Assembly: GCA_000320545.1 (NCBI GenBank)
Contig: ADNK01000562.1
Coordinates: forward strand, 24,590 to 88,589
Reading direction: 5' to 3'
Source: Bigelowiella natans CCMP2755
Lineage: Eukaryota; Protista; Cercozoa
DNA: 64,000 nt
This document shows, in pieces, positions 4,968-32,231 of this stretch. A program made the position numbers and the translations under genes. The notes beneath the pieces were generated by a model, which had not been told where the DNA came from, made no database searches, and was given only the letters and a program-made list of their open reading frames with translations. Numbering within the stretch: the stretch's first letter is position 1; the number at the start of each line of letters is the position of its first letter.

Positions 4968-6389
4968 TTATGAGTGACCTTCGGACTGTCTATCGAGATA
5001 TACAATATGGATGCCGTTCCTGGCTTCCCTAATTCTTTCCCAGCGCCCCATTCTATGCTCCTGCGCCACTCCTAAAACTAAGAAGCGTCCATTTCGTGAA
5101 AAGCAGATTCCGTTAATGTATCCAACGACTGGAATTTGATGAACTGAGGAAAGTTTCGTGTCGTCGGTAATTTGCCACAGCTTCAGGTAGCCATCACTGG
5201 ATCCTGAGGCAATGAGGTCCGTGAAGATACGGCTGGCGACTGATGTCACCCACCTACCAGCATGTGCACGATCTCGTTTTGCAATAGGCTTCTTTTTCTT
5301 TAGGGACCACAAGGCAACGCTCCCATCCTGGCAGGCTGTTACCCATCGTCCGTCATCGACGTAGCGCACGCAATCCAACGCTGCCTTTGCGCCCGTTTTG
5401 AACACGAGCTGAGTCTGCTCGGGTATCTTCCATAGACGACAGGACTTGTCGTACCCGGAGGTTATAGCACGTTCAAGAAGGAGACTGTCCATAGACAATA
5501 TATCGCTTTGATGTCCATACAGACTCTCCACGTAAGCTCCGGTGGCCAAGTCCCAGACGCGCACTGTGCGGTCAGTCGAGCCACTGAAGCAAGTGTACGT
5601 GTTTTCACGGAAGGCCACGCAAGTAATAGCATCTCTGTGCCCTGAAAGGCGGTACTTTAACTCAAATGATTCTGTGTCCCACACCATAAGGTAGGGGTCC
5701 TCCCCCCCCGATGCAAGGAGCTTGCCGTCCGTGCTCACCGCGACACAAAACACTGCGCGTGTATGGCCCATCGCGTTTCCTGTGTTGAATATGGAGCGCC
5801 TTTTCTTCGACTTTTTTTTCTTTGTCTCTATTTGGGGAACAACCCGCTTGATGGTGTAGAGCTTCTTGTGGTTGACAATGTCCCACTTAATAATGGACCC
5901 GTCCTTGGACCCGGTATACGCTACGGTGTCGTCGGCAGAGAGACACACGCATGTGACAGGCTTTCGATGGCCTCTCATGATCTTAATAGAGAAATCTTCT
6001 TGCTTTTTCTCCCGTATGTTCTCGGCAACCTTCCTCTTAAGTTTACCTTTCAATTTTTGGGCTTCCCTGTGCAGACGAAGAGCAATAGGGTCCATATCCT
6101 CCGTTTCCTTTCCCTCATCAACAATGCCGTCGTCGTCATCTTCTCCATCAGCTCCGGTAAATCCTGTCAGTGTGTCTAAATGTTCTTTTGCCAGCCTCAG
6201 TCTCCTTTCGTCTGATGTTTCTTCAAAAAACTCATCATCATTGAGTTGCTGGCCATCTTCTCCGTCAGAAGACTCGCTGCCGAAGGAGAATTCATCATCG
6301 TCCACCTCCTCATCTTTCTTAGTTCGCTTATTGATAGTGCCAGGCAACTTCATCCCGGCATTGCGGGATCGCGATCGGCCTCTTTTCAT
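4968..6389 (-). CDS. RRP9: U3 snoRNP-associated WD40 protein (U3-55K/Rrp9), intronless
   Basis: 473-aa ORF with acidic N-terminus ETSDERRLRLAKEHL, multiple WD40 repeats, AYVESLYGHQ, CRLWKIPEQTQLVF and C-terminal GVAQEHRMGRW typical of Rrp9. Confidence 0.93.
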   Translation of the reverse strand: MKRGRSRSRNAGMKLPGTINKRTKKDEEVDDDEFSFGSESSDGEDGQQLNDDEFFEETSDERRLRLAKEHLDTLTGFTGADGEDDDDGIVDEGKETEDMDPIALRLHREAQKLKGKLKRKVAENIREKKQEDFSIKIMRGHRKPVTCVCLSADDTVAYTGSKDGSIIKWDIVNHKKLYTIKRVVPQIETKKKKSKKRRSIFNTGNAMGHTRAVFCVAVSTDGKLLASGGEDPYLMVWDTESFELKYRLSGHRDAITCVAFRENTYTCFSGSTDRTVRVWDLATGAYVESLYGHQSDILSMDSLLLERAITSGYDKSCRLWKIPEQTQLVFKTGAKAALDCVRYVDDGRWVTACQDGSVALWSLKKKKPIAKRDRAHAGRWVTSVASRIFTDLIASGSSDGYLKLWQITDDTKLSSVHQIPVVGYINGICFSRNGRFLVLGVAQEHRMGRWERIREARNGIHIVYLDRQSEGHS

Positions 6390-10703: not shown

Positions 10704-13700
10704 TTAAGGAATACTGTGACAGTCGATGCTGCACGACCTCTTATCCCCGTTCAGACCATCGATAGTCTTTATTTCTTCAGGGGTGAGATCAAAATCGAAG
10801 ATGTCGTAGTTTTGCTTAATGCGATTCTCGGAGGAGGCGCGGGGGAGGGGCACAACGCCGCGCTGCACCATCCATTTTAAGATCACCTGCGCGCCGCTCT
10901 TGCCGTACTTCTCCCCGATCTCGCCCATGATAGGGTCATTGATGATGTTAAGACGGCCACGTCCGAAAGGAGAGTAGCCCATCAGCTTGATGCCGTGAGT
11001 TGTACTAAAGTCGAGGAGGCGATCACGGGTGTAGTAAGGATGCATCTCCACCTGGTTGACGGTGGGTGGAATCTCCGCAATGGAGAGAGTCTCCTTCAGG
11101 TGTCGGGTGGTCCAGTTTGCCACGCCGATCGATTTCACTACGCCGCGGCGCACCATCTCCTCAAGAGCACGCCACGTGAGTGTCCTCTTGGCCTTGTTCT
11201 CCCATCCAAACTGCTGTGCTTCAGGCTTTCCGGGAGCTGGCCCAGGCCAGTGAATGAGCACAAGATCCACGTAGTCAAGCTGCAGACGACGGAGGGATTT
11301 CTCTACCGATTCGATGGCGGAGCTATATCCCATGTCGTTCACCCAAACCTTGGTCACCACGTAGAAGTCCTCTCGCTTCATGCCACGCGACATAGCGTCC
11401 TTCAGTGCACGGCCAACGTCGGCCTCCGACTCGTACTTGGTAGCGGTGTCGATCAACCGGTAGCTGGTGATTGATGATGTTTCCAGCAGTGAAGAAGGGG
11501 GAGAGGGAGAACGAGACAAAGAAAAGAAGAGAGAATGAATGAGCATATACACGCAAGTGTTTTTTGTAATCTTTTTTTTTTTAAATGTCCCTCATGAATG
11601 CCGTATTCGCTTCCAAACAAAGAACAACGGAAGGAAAACACAGCATGCTGTGTTGTTGTAGATAGTGCGGTAAAGAAAAAAGCGCCGAATAACATACGAC
11701 AGAGTCATGATCGAAAGCTGCCACGTGATCCATCATGCATCTGACCCACATAGTAATACTGCACTTACCCAGCATTGATGGCTTGTGTGATCTTATCATC
11801 GCATGTGAGCGACCCGTCTTGAGCTGTGTGGATGAGGTCGGTACCGAACCCCACTGTGATGGGCATGTCGTTGAATTCCGACTTTGGAAGGTTTTCAGGA
11901 TCTGGCAGCTTCAAGGCCTCGTGGACCAGGCCTAGTGGAGGAGGAGGAAATTATGATAGTGATGAGGATGATGAGGATGATGGTGACGGTGACGGTGACG
12001 GTGACGGTGACGGTGACGGTGACGGGTTGCAGATTTAGGAGATTGACTCCACCATTATTATTACATCATGGCAATGGCAAATGGGGGGGGGGGGGGGGGG
12101 GAGTGAGGAGAGATCACGTATGCGCAGAGCGTCTATATTCTTTGAATAAGGAATCGGTGGCAGCAGTAGCATAAATTTGCTACCGCTACTACTAGCCGTA
12201 CCTTCTAGCTTGGCGAACTCCTTCATGGAAGTGACTTTAAAGTCAGGTCCTCCGTTGGAATAGTCCTGAGTGAACCTTTGATCGGGGATCGAGCACACGT
12301 ACATGCCGGCAGCTTTCGCACTCCATACAGCCATCGGGGAGTCGTCGAGGACCATCACCTGATAAGAGGGAATAGGAGGAGGAGGAGGAGGAGGAAGAGG
12401 AAGAATATGGATAAGGATGCAGATTCGTAATAATTGGATGATGAGGATAACCGACGGGGGACCTCATGGAATCGAGCAGATGCTAGGAAAGACAATATAG
12501 TTTACACACCCACTCCCTTCCCTCTCCCCCCTCCCATAACAAAGAGAACAATGCTTATTAGTTACCCGTTTGGGGTCTGCGCCCATGCGCTCAGCGGCTA
12601 ATGTGAACATCTCAGTCGATTTTTTGCCGAAATGAACCATTGCATCATCTCCGGTGATGACCACATCGAACATGTCCATGATATGCTTGTGGTTGGACAT
12701 CTTGCGATCCAATGACTCGCGGCTAGATGAGGTAGCCAAAGCGATAGGAAATCTGCAAAATATGAAACATCAGCATACGCGATCTTAGGAGGCGTCGCAT
12801 CTATCGTGTGTATCTATTTATCTATCTATCTAAATATCTATCATCTAAATTATGCTCGTTTTTCCATGTTTCTCCCTAGTGCCAGAGGGTTTGGCCTCGT
12901 CCTCATTCGCACAGCCGTGGTGGTTAAGGCACTGACCCTTTGCTCTTGAGGTTCTTGATGAGATCTTCTGCGCCTTCAATAAGGTTCAACTTGTCGTATT
13001 TCTCCTCCATCTGATAGAAAGTTATCGAGCACAGAAATGGTCAAGATGTTGCGATGATGATGGCGGCGACGCTGATCATGAAAGTCATCTTCCTCGTCAC
13101 CGATGAGACGGGACAAGGAGGTCACTGATGAAGACTTGATTGGTTGTCACATACGCAGAAAGAAAGGCGGTGAAGGAAGGAGAGGAATATGGAGAGAGTG
13201 AGGGGGAGAGAGAGTTTGAGATATTCAGATGCAGCAGTAGGTGCTCTATGCTTATATGTTCGCACTTACGAATTCGTAGTATCTCTTGATGAAGTTATCA
13301 GGATCTACGCGGTCGAGAAGGCGGTTGGAGTCAAGGATGACCTCTGCCATTCTGAAGGGAAGAAAAAGACAAAAGAATAAAAGAAGATTTGTGCTTAGAA
13401 CAGGTGGCAGCAGCAGTACATGCATTTTGCATTTTGAGAATAAACGAGGAAGTTTTCAGAATAAATGAGGACGAGGAACAGCAAGCACACCACGTCTTTC
13501 CTTCTTTCCTCTCATTTATTGAATTAAACAGCGTGCAGAGTGTGTAGTTGAGCGTAACGTTGATCTCTTGTGGATAACAGCGATCACGACAACGATAAGA
13601 TGTTAGTGGTGATGATAAAGAAGTATAGCATGAAGTACTCTTGAGTGCGAAGCCCCATGATCTTAGAGTGGAGGTCCCAGTTAACGCCAACATTTCCTGA

Positions 13701-23973: not shown

Positions 23974-26900
23974 TCAAAGTTCGCCCCGGATGATTCCTTC
24001 AAGTTCAATTGAGGCAGCAGCAAACTTGCGTATGCCCTCTGCGAGTTTATCGGTCGCCATAGCATCCTCGTTTAACATGAATCGGAATGTTTTTTTGTCC
24101 AGGCACATTTTGTCAAACTCTTCAATTTCAGCGAAATTTTTGCTTAATCTTTTCATGAGAGGTTCTTTGCACTCGCTCATTTGCTGCAAAAACTTCGGTC
24201 CTATCGTCAATTTATCACAACCAGCAAGCTCAATAATCTGTCCTCTATTACGAAATGAGGCTCCCATAACTATTGTCTTATATCCAAATTTCTTGTAGTA
24301 ATTGTAAATCTTCGTCACAGATTCAACACCAGGATCCCCCTTCCCATCCTTCCACTCCTTCCCTTCCTTTGCAGCATACCAGTCCATGATGCGCCCAACA
24401 AACGGAGATATCAAAGTGGCTCCAACTTCAGCGCACGCCACGGCTTGGCACATACTAAACAATAATGTCATATTGCAGTGGATGCCTTCTTTTTCGAGGA
24501 TTTCAGCTGCCTTAATACCTTCCCAGGTGCTTGCGATTTTTATCAAAACTTTCTTTGTAGGGTTGACTCCACGCTCCCTATACATTTTTACCAAAGAGCG
24601 TGCTTTGGCGACTGTAGCCTCGGTATCAAACGAAAGGCGAGCATCGACTTCAGTACTGACAACACCTGGAACAATCTTCGAAATTTCGACTCCAAAATTC
24701 ACAGCAAGCCGATCCATAGCTAGACTGACTATGGCTTCCAAAGATGAACCTTTTCCTTCTGATTTAGCATATTCTACAGCTTCTGATACGAGATGTTTAT
24801 ATGCTGGGAGCTTGCTTGCGCTAAGGATGAGTGAAGGATTTGTCGTAGCATCCACAGGTTTGTACTTCTTAATGGCCTCGATATCTCCAGTATCAGCCAC
24901 GATAATGGTGTACTGCTGAAGTGATTCTAATTGGTTCATCGGAAAATTACGAATTCCCCTTGGTATAGGTTTGTAGTGATGCTTTCGAATAATAGTTTCT
25001 AATTCAATTGAAGCTGCCGCAAATTTTCGAATACCTTCAGCCAGCTTTTCTGTTGCCATAGCATCTTCGTTTAGCATGAATCGGAATGTTTTTTTGTCAA
25101 TCGAAATCTTCTTAAAATCTGATGCAAGAGCAGATGTGGGGGCTAATTTTTGAAGAATGGGATCAGTACTTTCGCTCATTTGCTGCAAAAACTTCGGTCC
25201 TATCGTCAATTTATCACAACCAGCAAGCTCAATAATCTGTCCTCTATTACGAAATGAGGCTCCCATAACTATTGTCTTATATCCAAATTTCTTGTAGTAA
25301 TTGTAAATCTTCGTCACAGATTCAACACCAGGATCCCCCTTCCCATCCTTCCACTCCTTCCCTTCCTTTGCAGCATACCAGTCCATGATGCGCCCAACAA
25401 ACGGAGATATCAAAGTGGCTCCAACTTCAGCGCACGCCACGGCTTGGCACATACTAAACAATAATGTCATATTGCAGTGGATGCCTTCTTTTTCGAGGAT
25501 TTCAGCTGCCTTAATACCTTCCCAGGTGCTTGCGATTTTTATCAAAACTTTCTTTGTAGGGTTGACTCCACGCTCCCTATACATTTTTACCAAAGAGCGT
25601 GCTTTGGCGACTGTAGCCTCGGTATCAAACGAAAGGCGAGCATCGACTTCAGTACTGACAACACCTGGAACAATCTTCGAAATTTCGACTCCAAAATTCA
25701 CAGCAAGCCGATCCATAGCTAGACTCACTTGTTCTGATATATTTGCACATATCGTATGAGATCTTGCATATTCTACAGCTTCTGATACGAGATGTTTATA
25801 TGCTGGGAGCTTGCTTGCGCTAAGGATGAGTGAAGGATTTGTCGTTGCATCCACAGGTTTGTACTTCTTAATGGCCTCGATATCTCCAGTATCAGCCACG
25901 ATTTTGGTGAACTTATTAAGGGCGTCAAATTGGTTTCCCTTCGGTAAATGTGTAATATATTCGATATAGTGAAGATCGCGTTTTGCTGCAGCTTCAAATT
26001 GTGCTGCTACTGTAAATCCATGTTCTTTAATTTTAGCACCAGATTTTTCCAACCACTCTCTAACTGAAACGGCTATCTTTTCCGGCACAAACCCGAAATA
26101 TTCCATACAATCCTGTGAATTTTCACTTGTTATCTTTAAAGCTAGATTAAATCAGCATGATTGATTATTACCGATCCTTTGCCAGATACACCAAACGTCC
26201 TCATAACAATTGTATGATGAGCATACTTGTACCATCTAAGGAAGCATAATCACTTAATTGTAGAATTTCAAGGGGAAATTATTGAGAACCCGCTGGCAGC
26301 TGCAGCTTCAACAGCTATGATAGGTACTTTGAAAGGTAAAACTTGTCGACGATACTCAAGTGATTGCTCGTCAAAGAGCTTGGCACATGGCATCGAAACT
26401 ACTCCAATGTTTCCAAGAAGTTTGGCAGCCTCGAGGCATGTGCTAACTTCGGATCCAGTAGCGATTAGAATTGCATCAGGGTCCTAATGCATTTTTAAGT
26501 CATAGGCATTCTGAACTTTCGTGAACTGAAAGCACTACCTTTTGCTCTCTAAGAGTATAGGCACCTTTCGCTACATTTTCAATGCTGCTGCCATCTAGCT
26601 GGGGAAGTTTCTAATAGTTGAATATTTTAGGTGCAACGATACCGTGAGTATCATAAGATTTTATTTGTATGAATCCACCTGTCTACTTAAAGCAAACACA
26701 GAAGGTGTGTGTTGCTGCTCCATTGCAATTTTGTACGCCCCACTTGTCTCATTTCCTGTTTTGGATGCAAAATTTAAATTTGTTTGGTTTCAGAGGATTC
26801 ATGTTGTCACCATCTGCTGGACGAAACATGAGAACATTCGGAGTCATTCGGACCATATTCACCTAAAATATGCACACGTTGTCCGGTTGTGAGTCAATTT

Positions 26901-29611
26901 CAAATCTTTAGAAATCATTTGAAGCATATTGCTCACTTGCTCGATGGGCTGGTGTGTAGGCCCATCCTCTCCAATACCAAGAGAATCATGAGTCATAATA
27001 TATATGTGTTTATGTCCTGAGATAAGAAAGCTTTCAGCTGTGTGAGATGATTAACATTTTATTATTATACCACTAAGGGCAGCGAGACGCACAGCAGGGA
27101 ACATATATTCGATGAAAGTCAAGAACGTTGCAGTAAATGGGATGATTCCTAATTTGGCATTACAAACTCAGTGGTGATAGTCAAAATAGAAAGTTTTGAT
27201 TCTACCCCCGTAAGCATGAAGGCCATTCCCAATGGCACCCATTCCATGTTCACGAACACCGAATCGAAGGTACCTTCCCAAAGTCATAATTCAACTTCTT
27301 TGTAATAACAATTTGCTGCAGAGGCCGTCGTCTACCTTCCTTCGGGTGTCTTGCGTTGAAAATCCCCAGTACAATTAAGTTTAGTCTGCGTATGTATGGT
27401 TGTAAGCTGTAGAACAATGCAATAAATATTAGTTATGACAGGTAACAATTTTCTACTTTGTTTGAAGGTGTAAGGTCTGCAGAACCACCGACAAGTTCTG
27501 GCAGCACCTCGGCCAAGGCATTCAGTGCGGATCCAGAAAGAGAACGCGTTGCATTTGGTTTATCTTCGGGTGTGTACCTGGGTAATACTTTTTCCCAACC
27601 ATCTGGAAGCTTTCCAGCAAAACGGCGCTCAATTTCTGCTGCTTCCGTTGGATATTTCTCTTTATAACTTGAGAAAAGTGATGCCCATTCGGCAACAAGA
27701 CGGTTTCCTTCTTTCTTCTTCATGCGATATGCGTCTAGAACCTGATTAAGAATAACTTGCGTCCTGCTCTATGGGACGATATTCTAGATTACTTACTTTG
27801 GGAGGAACATGGAAGTTTACATTTGGATCGAATCCGAACCTTTCTTTCACCTAATTGTGAACGTATAATTTTTACTGTGTATAATTCATTTTCTTGAGTC
27901 TGTAGTTTGTTTGACCTTTGCAACATCTTCTGTCCCGAGAGGGGCGCCATGAACTTCATGAGTTCCTTCCTTCGATGATCCAAATCCAATTACTGTCTTG
28001 CATTTGATAATCGTTGGCATATGCTTCTCCTAAATCATGTCAAATATATGTCATACCCCCTTCCAGAATTGCATATTCGTATTAGCTTGCTAACTTGTTG
28101 TGCAATCTTGATTGCGGCCATGATAGCTTTTGTATCACGGTTGGCATCCAGCACCTAAAGTTTGTAGACAACAAAGCATTTAAGTTGTGAGTTGCAACTA
28201 TTTACAGTGATACAAAGTATGTGTAACCACCTCTAGCACTTGCCATCCGTAAGCTTCAAAACGTAACCCAACATCTTCGGTGAAACTCAAGCTTGTGTCC
28301 CCATCGATAGTAATATTGTTGTCGTCATAAAGGACGATTAACTACAGCATATCGAGCACATCAAGTAACATCAATTTATCCAACATGTACACAATACACA
28401 GTACTACCTTTCCCAGACCAAGATGTCCAGCTAGAGAACATGCCTCAGATGCAACTCCCTCTTGCATGCATCCATCTCCACAAAGAACATAGGTGTAGTT
28501 ATCAAAGATTTCAAATCCAGGTTTGTTGTACTTGGCCGCCATGTGCTTTTCAGCAATAGCCATGCCTATGGCATTGCTGATGCCTAGTTATTATCGCATG
28601 ATTCAAAGACTCATTTTCACTAAAGGCCTTAGAATGGACCTTGTCCTAGGGGGCCTGTACTAACCTCAATACCCTTCGTACAATGACGCTCAGGATGGCC
28701 TGGGGTACTTTAAAATCAAATGCAATGTCTAAGTTTGATTCTTATAAATTTAGTAAAAATAATGATAATACCGACTACAGCAAACCCGAAAATTCTGAAG
28801 GTCTTCCATACCAACACTATCGTATCCCGTAAGAAACATCATCAGGTATTGTAGAGCGCAGCTATGGCCGTTGGAGAGAACAAATCGATCTCTTCCGATC
28901 TGTAATAGCAGTCCACAATAACATATCAAACTTAAGGAACTGTGCGGTATATGCTGACAAAAAAGCTACCCAATCCGGATCTTGCGGAGCATATCGCATT
29001 ATTTCTCCCCAAAGCACGTGAGCCATTGCTGCCATCCCCATCGGGGCACCTAGTGAAAAGAAAATGAGGTAGTCTAAGTCGGCCTAATATTCATTCACCT
29101 GGATGTCCACAATTTGCCCTTTGCACAATATCGGCAGCAAGTGTGCGAACTGTTCCAATTTGCCGTTCCTGAACATAAACATGAATTTTATCACGATGCA
29201 AAGGATTTATTTGAATGTAATCGCACCATCAGGACGCAGTTTTTTTTATCTTCAAGCACCTGGAGAAGATCGATAGAGGGCAAATGTGTATGCTACATTT
29301 TCCATTATTAGCATTTGAACTCTGGACGACTACGTACCTCCTTCTTCGAATCAACTTGCAACAATTTTGGTACATCTACCGAAATTATTTCTATGACGTC
29401 ATTGAATTGTGATCTAAAGGGAGTCTTTACCATCGGAGGCTTTTGTCGCTTCTTGAGATTTACTGACAGTAGGTACGTCAGTAGTCTTAGCCCCTTCAAG
29501 TTTGTGCAATTGTTCATTTTTCTCTTTTCGTCGATAACTTTTCTTCCGGGGCGTGGTCTTATTGCCGGACTTTGCCTCCATGTCCTTCCAAAATCTCATT
29601 GCACTAGCCAT
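23974..29611 (-). CDS. TKT-TAL: Transketolase-transaldolase-transaldolase fusion protein
   Basis: About 20 short introns join TKT motifs ([98 protein letters not shown]). The last intron (26113-26171) leads into a 2.14-kb exon that starts with the TKT C-terminus [14 protein letters not shown] and runs without a stop through two full transaldolase domains ([42 protein letters not shown]). Confidence 0.93.
23977..25930 (-). repeat. Tandem 999-bp duplication encoding the two transaldolase domains
   Basis: 24173-24726 is identical to 25172-25725, and 24767-24903 matches 25766-25902 except for one base. The constant 999-bp offset also shows in the duplicated antisense ORFs at 24386/25385 and 24478/25477. 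Confidence 0.95.
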
Positions 29612-29741
29612 CTTGAAAGATCGAGCGGGGTGGGTAAATGGGTCTCAATTGAGAAAGATTTGGGGCTAGGGATTTGCACGACTTTCAATTTGAGCTAGGG
29701 TTTGAACACGTGATGGGAAAAAAAGCATCAGTGGGAAAGTA

Positions 29742-31305
29742 GTGCCTCCTCTCCCATTGTTTGATCCACAAGGAGCCATTTCTTCTCGCTAGATTTTGGA
29801 TGACATGTCGCACATCTCAAATCAAGGAGTTTTGCATCAGAGATCATCCACCAGAAAGAGACTTCAATTGCTTCTCTCTCTCTCTCTCTCTCAAACAGCA
29901 CAATCCTTTTCTGGTGGGTTTCATGAGCTGAATCTTGGGGAGGAGCTCCTGACCAGCAGTCACTGCAGTTTGCAATGGGTTCCCAAAATGGGGAGTGATT
30001 CCCAGTGGAAATCACAGCGACAAACAAGAGTCTCCACCTCTCACTTGCCAAACAGATCTAGCAGTGTGTGCAACGTGATTTCTCTGGCTCTCATCATCCT
30101 CCTCACGCGATTGGACTCATGGGCTCTTCGGCGGACAGGAACAAGTGAACCAAGTGCCTCTCGGACAGCAGAGTTCGCACGCACTTCGTGCTTGTCCAAA
30201 CTCGAACCACGACCGAGTTCGCGGATTGGCTCAGCAACCAGCACTGTGCAGCTGGCCAGCCTGGCAGTGTGAGCACGAATCGACTTTGCCAGTCTGAGCA
30301 GTCTGGCAGTGCTCACGAACCAGCCAGCTGGCCAGTGCCAGAGTGGCACTTCGTGTCTTCCAGCCTTTCGTTTGCGCCAGTCTCAGTCCAGCGGTGCGTC
30401 CTCTCTGGCTCTCCAGCTCCAGAGCTCTGGACCAGTGGAGAAAGATCAAGAGAACCCTGAAAGTGAAAAAATCGAAGGGACCAACTTGCAAGTCCAGAAG
30501 TGCACTTGAATCACAGTGAACCTTCAGTGCAGACGCTTGTCTCCAATGTTGGCACGCCTTGGGTTCTTGCGCGTGTGGTTTTCGGGTTTCCAGAACTGCG
30601 TCAATGCTCACGCCAGCACGCAGTGCTGCCAGTCTGGAGTTCACGTCAATGTTCAGTGTTCAATGCTGGAGTGTTCACCAGTTCAGTGCAGCAAACGTTT
30701 TCGTTTCACCAAAAAGTGAGCACACACGCGCTGCGTGTGCTGGTGCGTGGTGCGAAAGCAAGCCTGGGTGTGGTGGGAGAAAATCACGTTGCCCAGCCCT
30801 CCAGCGCTCGATGTGCATCAGCATGGCCAGATCAGCAGGTTGCACTTGAGAACTTTCAGATTTTGTGCATCGTTTTCCACACTTGCAAGCATCATGCAAC
30901 CTTGTGGCAAACCGCAGAATGGAAACTTTGTTCAACTCAATTTCAACCTCTTTGTTGAGAAACAATCATCTTTTTCTGAATGTGAAGGGGGAATCAGCGG
31001 ACAACTCAGACTGTGCTCCTGTCCTGGCGCCAAAATTGGAGAGAAGCGAATTCCTTGACGTGTCTGGAGGTGATCAGGGCAAGAGATTTGACTGATTGGC
31101 TCATTCACTTTCGCAAAAGAAGCATTTGTCCAAGTTGAAGTCCCTTTCGGGTGCGCTTTGACAAGTTTCGTGAAGATGAAGGAAATTTTCTCATCATCAG
31201 GCGGGGTGCGAGGCATGGCTAGAATCACTTCGGCTCCATGGCTGATCGAAATGTCTCGGTTCTGCAAGGCTGTTTCTCTTGTCTCCAAATTTCCGGGGTC
31301 AGATG
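29742..31305. other. TpA-void island
   Basis: Manual count of no TA from 30061 to 31219, and only three in 29742-31305, all in CTAG; CpG plentiful. Confidence 0.93.
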
Positions 31306-32063
31306 TGATTAACATGGTCCCGTTCTTTGAAATGTCTTTGAGCACAATTTCATCCTTGTCATGGGATTTCAGGATTTGGCAATGGAATCCACTGATCTCT
31401 CGTCTGTTCACTGGCAAGGTGCAACTAGCATGCCTTCCTAGCGTTATTTTTCCCTCGCACAGGTACATCGTGGATTGGAAGCCGTGTGTGGCGACTAATT
31501 TTCCCCATGGCTGAATTCCACCCCTCCGAATTTCCCTCTCCATCATTTGCTCAAGATGGCGCTCCTAAAGCCCCTGAACAAAGGATGATTAGTGAACGAA
31601 GCTTGTTTTGAACTATCGTCACCTTTAGTAATTTCTTCAATTTGATTGAAGATAAATATCTTGCAAGACTTCCCAACAGCATCTCGTCTGCTGAATATTC
31701 GAGAACGATGGAAGCGATCACAGAGCCCAGACCAAGTCGCGGCGGAATTGGGAAAGAAGAATCGGTAGTGGCTCGAGTCATAACTTTGCGTTTGGTCTTC
31801 TTCTTCCTGCATTGAGCCACCCTTCCACGTTTCCTATCTCGCATGCTACTCTTCTACTCAATAATGTTTTCGCATCTGGTGTCGTTCTCTCGTGGGTGGG
31901 TTGTGGAAGGGTTTCCCTCCTCGCAAGTTTTCAAGCAACAAGTCAATGTTTGGGTGTCGCAGTTTTGCATAATGCTGCATTCGTTACCTCTTGAAAAGGC
32001 TGGCTTTCTTCTTGTCGCTTTCGTGTATCTTCCTATGGTTTTTCCTCGCGACACTCCCTTCAT
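30675..32063 (-). CDS. FHA-domain protein (CHFR/Chk2-type FHA), possibly pseudogenised in its 3' half; ends uncertain
   Basis: QPWGKL..ITLGRHASC..ISGFHC..LKDISKNGT carries the FHA GR, S..H and NGT motifs. An upstream exon ..SIKLKKLLK splices in frame to ERHLEQMMERE. Confidence 0.7.
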
Positions 32064-32231
32064 GAAGTCAAATTTCTGCCGCTCAGCACAATCTGAATGA
32101 AACGGGAAAAGCGGGCTCCATTTCTAACAAGATCTCAATAATTTTGTTTGATTTCATTGTCGCAACAACAAAAACGTATATTTCGTCCGCGTCTTCCCTC
32201 CCCGCTTCCTCTCGATTGGGACATTGGGACA

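Follow-up and report, generated by a model that had tools for sequence, protein, structure and literature searches.

In the 64,000-nt window analysed here, the whole stretch of Bigelowiella natans DNA to which all positions refer, one gene on the minus strand (23974-29611) joins a transketolase (TKT) to two transaldolases (TAL1 and TAL2). The coding sequence, spliced from 23 exons, is 4,272 nt long and reads without an internal stop into 1,423 aa, where the initial annotation had claimed about 1450 aa. From N- to C-terminus, all on the minus strand, it encodes an 84-aa basic, K/R-rich extension (29227-29611, made up of exons 1-3 at 29611-29431, 29375-29338 and 29259-29227), a TKT with N, pyrimidine-binding and C domains (25954-29168, exons 4-22 and 53 codons at the start of exon 23), a 6-aa linker (25936-25953), an intronless TAL1 of the TalB type (24976-25935), a 12-aa linker predicted to be disordered (24940-24975), and TAL2, which starts with Met and is followed by the stop codon (23974-24939). 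The 5' UTR spans 29612-29719 on the same strand; a contig of RNA run X15 begins at 29719, and an in-frame stop lies 17 codons upstream of the ATG.

The 22 introns, each of 49-78 nt and with GT-AG ends in 22 of 22, lie upstream of the last exon (26112-23974, minus strand). This exon is a single stop-free frame of 712 codons, which holds the final 53 TKT residues, the 6-aa linker and two complete TAL_FSA domains, found as two stretches matching PF00923 (E 8.8e-188). Because the TKT C-terminus and both TAL domains sit inside one stop-free exon, the fusion does not depend on a splice guess, as first argued; as to a stop or frameshift in the linker, the frame is open at the TKT end and no stop is found. 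Compared exon by exon with Pfam and PDB, the spliced model has, in this order, Transketolase_N, Transket_pyr and C domains. It has the GDG...N thiamine-diphosphate/metal motif, catalytic Glu418, His30/69/103/263/469/481, Arg359/528, Ser386 and Asp477, in yeast transketolase numbering. Each TAL copy forms a complete TAL_FSA barrel and has the Schiff-base Lys132 together with Glu96 and Phe178, the signature of a transaldolase and not of FSA; equivalents of D17, N35, E96, K132, N154, T156, S176, F178, R181, S226 and R228 are present, and the fold matches TalB/TALDO1-type structures (TM 0.98 of target, rmsd 1.0). Every TKT and TAL motif checked was found, so that the early view of intact catalytic motifs in all three domains holds; both activities are likely to be live.

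The TKT-TAL-TAL fusion gene is real and transcribed. RNA contigs from three studies are spliced from the 5' UTR across TKT into TAL1, and in each of the three RNA runs a single unbranched contig crosses the TKT-TAL1 junction, to 25873; the unique TAL1-TAL2 linker is covered by a separate contig in RNA and DNA, so that both junctions are transcribed. At least 15 splice joints are common to all three RNA runs, and 0 of those listed occur in the DNA run. Positions 304, 897, 1521 and 2257/2258 of the run X15 contigs match to the base by exon arithmetic, and seven upstream introns are placed by exact length match and GT-AG ends. The RNA evidence consists of short-read contigs in which the TAL repeat collapses, with no single molecule covering the whole coding sequence; the run type "RNA" is an automated guess, and the contigs from these runs are without introns. 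In our estimate a full-length fusion protein is very likely made. Might the chain be cut once translated, or TAL2 be made in part by re-initiation at its Met, with the enzymes acting apart? The Met itself and the predicted disorder of the linkers would fit, as would the greater RNA-run depth of the linker contigs over the TKT contig, although this trend is consistent with 3' bias and contig depth is unfit to rank parts of a gene. No cleavage module is recognisable, and we consider such a polyprotein quite improbable.

A 554-nt block at 24173-24726 is identical to 25172-25725, at an offset of 999 nt. Such a perfect repeat, in a gene that no single contig covers, might suggest that the tandem was mis-assembled or that two adjacent genes have been read as one. 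In the DNA run X7, however, the repeat contig has a depth of 126, against 64 and 80 on its flanks; the unique linker contig is present in 4 of 4 runs; over their C-terminal 66 codons, the TAL copies are near silent-site saturation (pS 0.75); TKT ends without a stop; and contig C2539 carries a 77-nt copy that accounts for the one loose end in the DNA contigs. We reject an assembly artefact on the doubled DNA depth, the linker contig and the silent-site divergence, and an artefact of either kind seems extremely unlikely. The identical block is likely a gene-conversion tract between the TAL copies, by which the two halves have most likely been partly homogenised.

How did such a gene arise? The B. 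natans genome has two unfused TKT paralogues, L020 and L021, which are 80-81% identical in aa sequence to the fused TKT and end exactly at the fusion junction: the 6-aa linker begins at the codon that is a stop in both. All 16 intron positions tested are common to the fused TKT and these paralogues. The parent unfused TAL gene has eight introns, of which 7/8 are common to the older paralogue(s), and the fused copies keep 0/8. The inserted TAL part has thus lost every ancestral intron while the host TKT part retains its own, as is expected of a chimeric retrogene. Since the fused TALs are intronless, this part is most likely a retrocopy, the alternative being fusion at the DNA level followed by 3'-biased intron loss. 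No poly(A) run was found in the 3' flank, a remnant being unexpected at saturated dS. We rejected a bacterial source of the intronless part, whether by contamination or by transfer, because the part lies inside a spliced gene and clusters with chlorarachniophyte TALs; in a quick tree the window TALs pair together (support 99) within a clade of chlorarachniophyte TALs (support 98).

Fused gene and parent genes differ by pS 0.76-0.86 (dS saturated) and dN 0.13-0.14, and because of these values the fusion, judged by its substitutions, is old and under purifying selection. The fusion itself stands as first described; what was overlooked is that the TAL part looks like a retrocopy and that unfused TKT and TAL paralogues are kept in the same genome, a coexistence that we count against our own preferred explanation. 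Among other chlorarachniophytes no such fusion turned up: their TALs are 323-325 aa long and one Amorphochlora TKT is 686 aa, so that the fusion may be dispensable.

Our best explanation, which we favour with moderate confidence, is that of a real, old chimeric gene with a retrocopied TAL at the TKT stop, encoding a tethered two-activity module whose intermediates pass by diffusion. For the gene's origin we infer that a reverse-transcribed TAL mRNA was added to a duplicate of an intron-rich, cytosolic-type TKT gene, at the stop codon of the latter. Tandem duplication of the TAL unit would have come before or after fusion, with gene conversion keeping the copies alike, and three new 5' exons would have been added to the fused gene.

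Is the architecture new? The TKT part agrees with the yeast/plant/E. coli-type transketolases (PF00456, PF02779, PF22613; PDB 1ITZ, 1GPU) in the order of its domains, in its thiamine-diphosphate motif and in its catalytic residues, but has no C-terminal stop, runs on into two TALs and carries the 84-aa extension. The TAL parts have the fold and catalytic-residue equivalents of TalB/TALDO1-type transaldolase (PF00923; PDB 1ONR, 1F05, 2CWN), but come two to a chain and joined to TKT. Nannochloropsis, brown algae, Quaeritorhiza and other eukaryotes also have TAL-TAL proteins (about 640-750 aa) with two full TAL domains in tandem, whose halves are 61-91% alike, with identical runs of >100 aa in some. 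These are without TKT, however, and in a quick tree they make up about nine separate groups, with halves in clades apart from the window halves, which fall with the chlorarachniophyte single TALs; their origins would therefore be separate from that of the window tandem. Descent from the ochrophyte TAL-TAL was rejected (55-60% identity, separate clades).

The ESM Atlas holds a 988-aa bacterial cluster representative in which, as in the fusion, TKT and TAL are named in one predicted chain, but its length leaves room for one TAL only. It is probably a read-through or stop-loss in an enterobacterial talA-tkt operon, although 0 of 120 such operons examined were fused. Further searches found no TKT-TAL fusion in 301 genomes of one bacterial phylum, in whose TAL-bearing genomes, 90 in number, no TAL frame exceeds 611 aa. 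Nor was one found among proteins of 392-1,246 aa and of 207-660 aa in the main protein database, among the best 150 of the 50% representatives (all ≤469 aa), in 82 metagenome loci or by Atlas feature searches; a narrow TKT-then-TAL DNA pattern had 0 matches in bacterial genomes, and over all these searches the 988-aa Atlas structure row is the only hit. The papers searched describe no natural TKT-TAL fusion, and to that extent the claim of a novel architecture survives; with TAL-TAL common in ochrophytes and other eukaryotes, and with the Atlas model, the novelty is narrower than first claimed. Other pentose-phosphate fusions are known, including G6PD-6PGL (PMC4470864, citing Stover 2011, PMC3148214, in whose text TKT and TAL are absent) and an Rpe-Tkt N-terminus fusion in Thaumarchaeota (PMC11237513); these too place enzymes of one pathway in one chain, but the enzyme pairs differ.

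How would the chain work? AlphaFold (AF2) docks the TAL-TAL halves rigidly across a disordered linker with a 148-row alignment (pTM 0.88), and gives no rigid docking with a 28-row alignment (pTM 0.52). The proposed intramolecular TAL-TAL dimer thus appears with the deeper alignment and is lost with the shallow one; the predicted arrangement depends on alignment depth and may echo the known homodimer. In the explanation we favour, the chain would act as a two-activity non-oxidative pentose-phosphate module. The TKT parts would dimerise in the usual way and the two TAL barrels of each chain would pair with each other, and such internal pairing would let the assembly close as a defined dimer of 2 TKT and 4 TAL sites, with no need to polymerise through two separate dimer interfaces. 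TAL-TAL tandems have repeatedly arisen in proteins that lack TKT, so that the duplication need not be a response to the fusion with TKT. Sedoheptulose-7-P and glyceraldehyde-3-P would diffuse between the tethered sites, without a tunnel, and the benefit would be fixed co-expression and co-location, perhaps with glyceraldehyde-3-P shielded from GAPDH and TPI.

One might think instead of true channelling, in which TKT docks TAL1 and both intermediates move between sites without bulk mixing. The two reactions are consecutive, the 6-aa linker is short, and the fusion is kept under purifying selection although free paralogues exist. The TKT tail of about 30 aa before that linker, however, is modelled at pLDDT <50, and the same tail is present in unfused TKTs. 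Active sites, moreover, are open in both the TKT and TAL families. In modelling, proximity of TK and TAL brings a gain with a competing enzyme present, but proximity alone pays only in limited regimes (PMC6345930), and docked channelling seems to us very doubtful. A measurable kinetic coupling in the fusion has a modest chance. A lesser one attaches to the fullest version, a first natural TKT-TAL enzyme with its complex closed by an internal TAL pseudo-dimer and both intermediates kept from glycolysis to a measurable degree, perhaps within a separate compartment determined by the N-terminus.

Taken singly, the enzymes are ordinary, and protists commonly fuse enzymes that are neighbours in a pathway, so that the interest of the case is limited. 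TKT-TAL tethering, modelled as above, has also been tried synthetically for xylose-fermenting yeast: a coiled-coil TKL-TAL complex, the same pair with the same rationale but synthetic and non-covalent, sped growth on xylose, according to unpublished results cited in PMC3489712. The B. natans fusion would be an old, selected natural test of whether tethering aids intermediate transfer, and the unfused TKT and TAL paralogues of about 80% identity in the same genome provide its controls. It also shows clearly how a multi-enzyme was apparently assembled, through retroposition, duplication in tandem and gene conversion. Nor do the papers searched describe the repeated, independent rise of TAL-TAL across eukaryotes.

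The N-terminal extension raises a further question. It is missing from the unfused TKT paralogues, contains 20 K/R and 13 acidic residues and no hydrophobic signal peptide, and its reading frame is stop-free in 0.2% of base shuffles; no homologue of exon 1 was found in the B. natans genome or Pfam. Could the basic N-terminus direct the module to another compartment, the nucleus or, less likely, the mitochondrion, with TAL riding on one signal? The extension is spliced in RNA, its open frame is improbable by chance, and human TALDO1 isoforms are reported to vary in nuclear localisation with their N-terminus (PMC5050407). The basic cluster, however, is NLS-like only loosely (by eye), there is no signal peptide, and the acidic residues speak against a mitochondrial presequence. 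Such co-targeting is, in our estimate, rather improbable, and Met84 is a possible translation start.

The fusion of transketolase (TKT) to two transaldolases (TAL1 and TAL2) on the minus strand at 29611-23974 is real, transcribed and selected, and is assembled from ordinary parts. The initial annotation rightly placed the TKT end and two complete TAL domains in one exon: the last exon (26112-23974) is a single open frame, and RNA contigs cross the junction. RNA-contig splice joints and GT-AG ends define 23 exons, separated by 22 introns of 49-78 nt; cumulative exon lengths agree exactly with positions inside the contig of RNA run X15. The spliced coding sequence is stop-free and keeps the fusion frame, at a length of 1,423 aa rather than the roughly 1450 aa first proposed. 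Each of three RNA runs, drawn from three studies, has one intron-free contig that runs from the 5' UTR across every TKT exon and on to 25873 inside TAL1, with no stop or branch listed at the TKT end. As short-read contigs merge the two TAL copies, none of them covers the gene from end to end.

Is the tandem itself mis-assembled? With an offset of 999 nt and a 554-nt block identical between them, the copies could suggest so, but depth in DNA run X7 is 126 over the collapsed repeat versus 64 and 80 in its flanks, the TAL1-TAL2 linker is unique and present as a contig in all four runs, and over their last 66 codons the copies have diverged at 75% of silent sites, so that an artefact is very improbable. 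With the central 183 codons identical, the codon pattern is consistent with an old duplication and recent gene conversion. The sole loose DNA end was traced to a 77-nt, 95%-identical copy of part of TAL1 (25146-25222), inserted elsewhere in the genome (L019:4638-4714; G000:C2539:25137-25213).

What were the parents? The B. natans assembly (91,405,885 bases, 3,736 contigs) holds three further TKT loci, on contigs C2227, C3592 and C2019. Those on C3592 and C2019 have 80-81% identity to the TKT part of the fused gene, agree with it in all 16 intron positions tested, and have their stop codon at the exact codon where the fused gene enters a 6-aa linker to TAL1. These two loci (L020, L021), the fused gene (tail at 26040-25954) and the chlorarachniophyte protein P0381 have in common a C-terminal TKT tail of about 30 aa with no Pfam match, which would serve in the fusion as a ready-made spacer. 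The third locus (L022:2820-5319, on C2227) is a plastid-type TKT, a distant relative of the three intron-rich TKTs with an intronless enzyme part, and looks from its sequence to carry signal and transit peptides. The TAL closest to the fused copies, on C2301, is 80% identical, matches protein Bigna1/48813 residue for residue, and is interrupted by 8 introns, of which a more distant paralogue on C616 shares 7; both fused copies are intronless. On the simplest reading the TAL part would be a retrocopy inserted at the TKT stop codon, though a DNA-level fusion followed by 3'-biased intron loss is a possible source of the same absence. Against all parents, the fused gene is saturated at silent sites with dN of 0.13-0.14, and is therefore old and under purifying selection. 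At G000:C1788:10361-11023 a frame of 283 codons, free of introns, matches TAL_FSA weakly (56.6 bits).

The catalytic motifs of all three domains are intact, as had been suggested: every TKT motif sought was found, the TKT domains were confirmed by domain search one exon at a time, and both TALs carry equivalents of the Schiff-base lysine, Glu96 and Phe178. The predicted TAL fold matches mouse and human TAL with an rmsd of about 1 Å. AlphaFold gave a pTM of 0.52 for the last exon with a 28-row alignment, and 0.88 for TAL1-TAL2, with a disordered linker, from a 148-row alignment; the latter model is compatible with the two TALs pairing inside one chain as a pseudo-dimer, but could be an echo of the known homodimer. 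TKT forms homodimers, and TAL of the TalB type is usually a dimer. A chain with one TAL would present one dimer interface on TKT and another on TAL, and might polymerise; a second TAL would let the TAL interface be satisfied internally, so that the complex would close as a dimer holding 2 TKT and 4 TAL sites. Intermediates would most likely move between the tethered sites by diffusion; true channelling between TKT and TAL is doubtful, and a polyprotein cleaved after translation equally so.

Three extra 5' exons, absent from the paralogues, encode 84 basic, hydrophilic residues, a stretch stop-free in just 0.2% of base shuffles. The extension has no signal peptide, which makes a plastid or periplastid location unlikely; that it directs the TKT-TAL module elsewhere, as co-targeting by a new N-terminus, is a rather slim prospect.

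GAPDH is described as draining glyceraldehyde-3-P between TKL and TAL, and an unpublished result has tethered TKL and TAL giving faster xylose growth (both PMC3489712); modelling finds a gain from TK-TAL proximity with the competing enzyme TPI present (PMC6345930). The fusion makes such coupling testable, with natural controls at hand.

The suggestion that the architecture is uncharacterised holds in part: a literature search turned up no description of a natural TKT-TAL fusion, but TAL-TAL tandems and a bacterial model exist. The latter, a 988-aa representative from an Atlas structure search, is named for both TKT and TAL in one chain, as in B. natans; its cluster of 500 members is 97% bacterial, and the Pfam families listed are TKT domains. 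By name and length it is a counter-example to complete novelty. Its length is that expected from stop-loss in an enterobacterial talA-tkt operon. Among 120 such operons 29 are in frame save for the TAL stop and none is fused, and no TAL frame exceeds 611 aa in 90 TAL-bearing genomes of the enterobacterial phylum. Judged from name and length, we take the model for sporadic read-through. The B. natans protein is apparently an undescribed case of a known fusion type, which joins pathway-neighbour enzymes.

TAL-TAL tandems of about 640-750 aa occur in Nannochloropsis, brown algae, the chytrid Quaeritorhiza and many further eukaryotes, their halves often homogenised, several with long identical runs. 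They form separate groups in a quick tree, about nine among proteins P0001-P0027, and the window pair falls within the clade that holds the chlorarachniophyte single TALs. Such tandems appear, from this tree, to have arisen about nine times in eukaryotes, a repeated origin of which the literature search found no description. TALs stand alone (323-325 aa) in Norrisiella, Chlorarachnion and Lotharella, and Amorphochlora has a 686-aa TKT; the fusion was therefore seen only in B. natans, relatives in the main protein database being compared at lengths up to 1,246 aa. An intronless single TAL of the same clade (72% identity) lies on a marine metagenome contig (L023:4336-5619).

Upstream of the fused gene, a neighbour at 30932-32100 (minus) resembles by eye an FHA-domain kinase gene, and a contig of RNA run X19 continues about 800 nt past 29750 towards it. 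Two ordinary genes were recognised by eye on the minus strand: a WD40 protein like Rrp9/U3-55K at 4968-6389, and at 10704-11552 an aldo-keto reductase.
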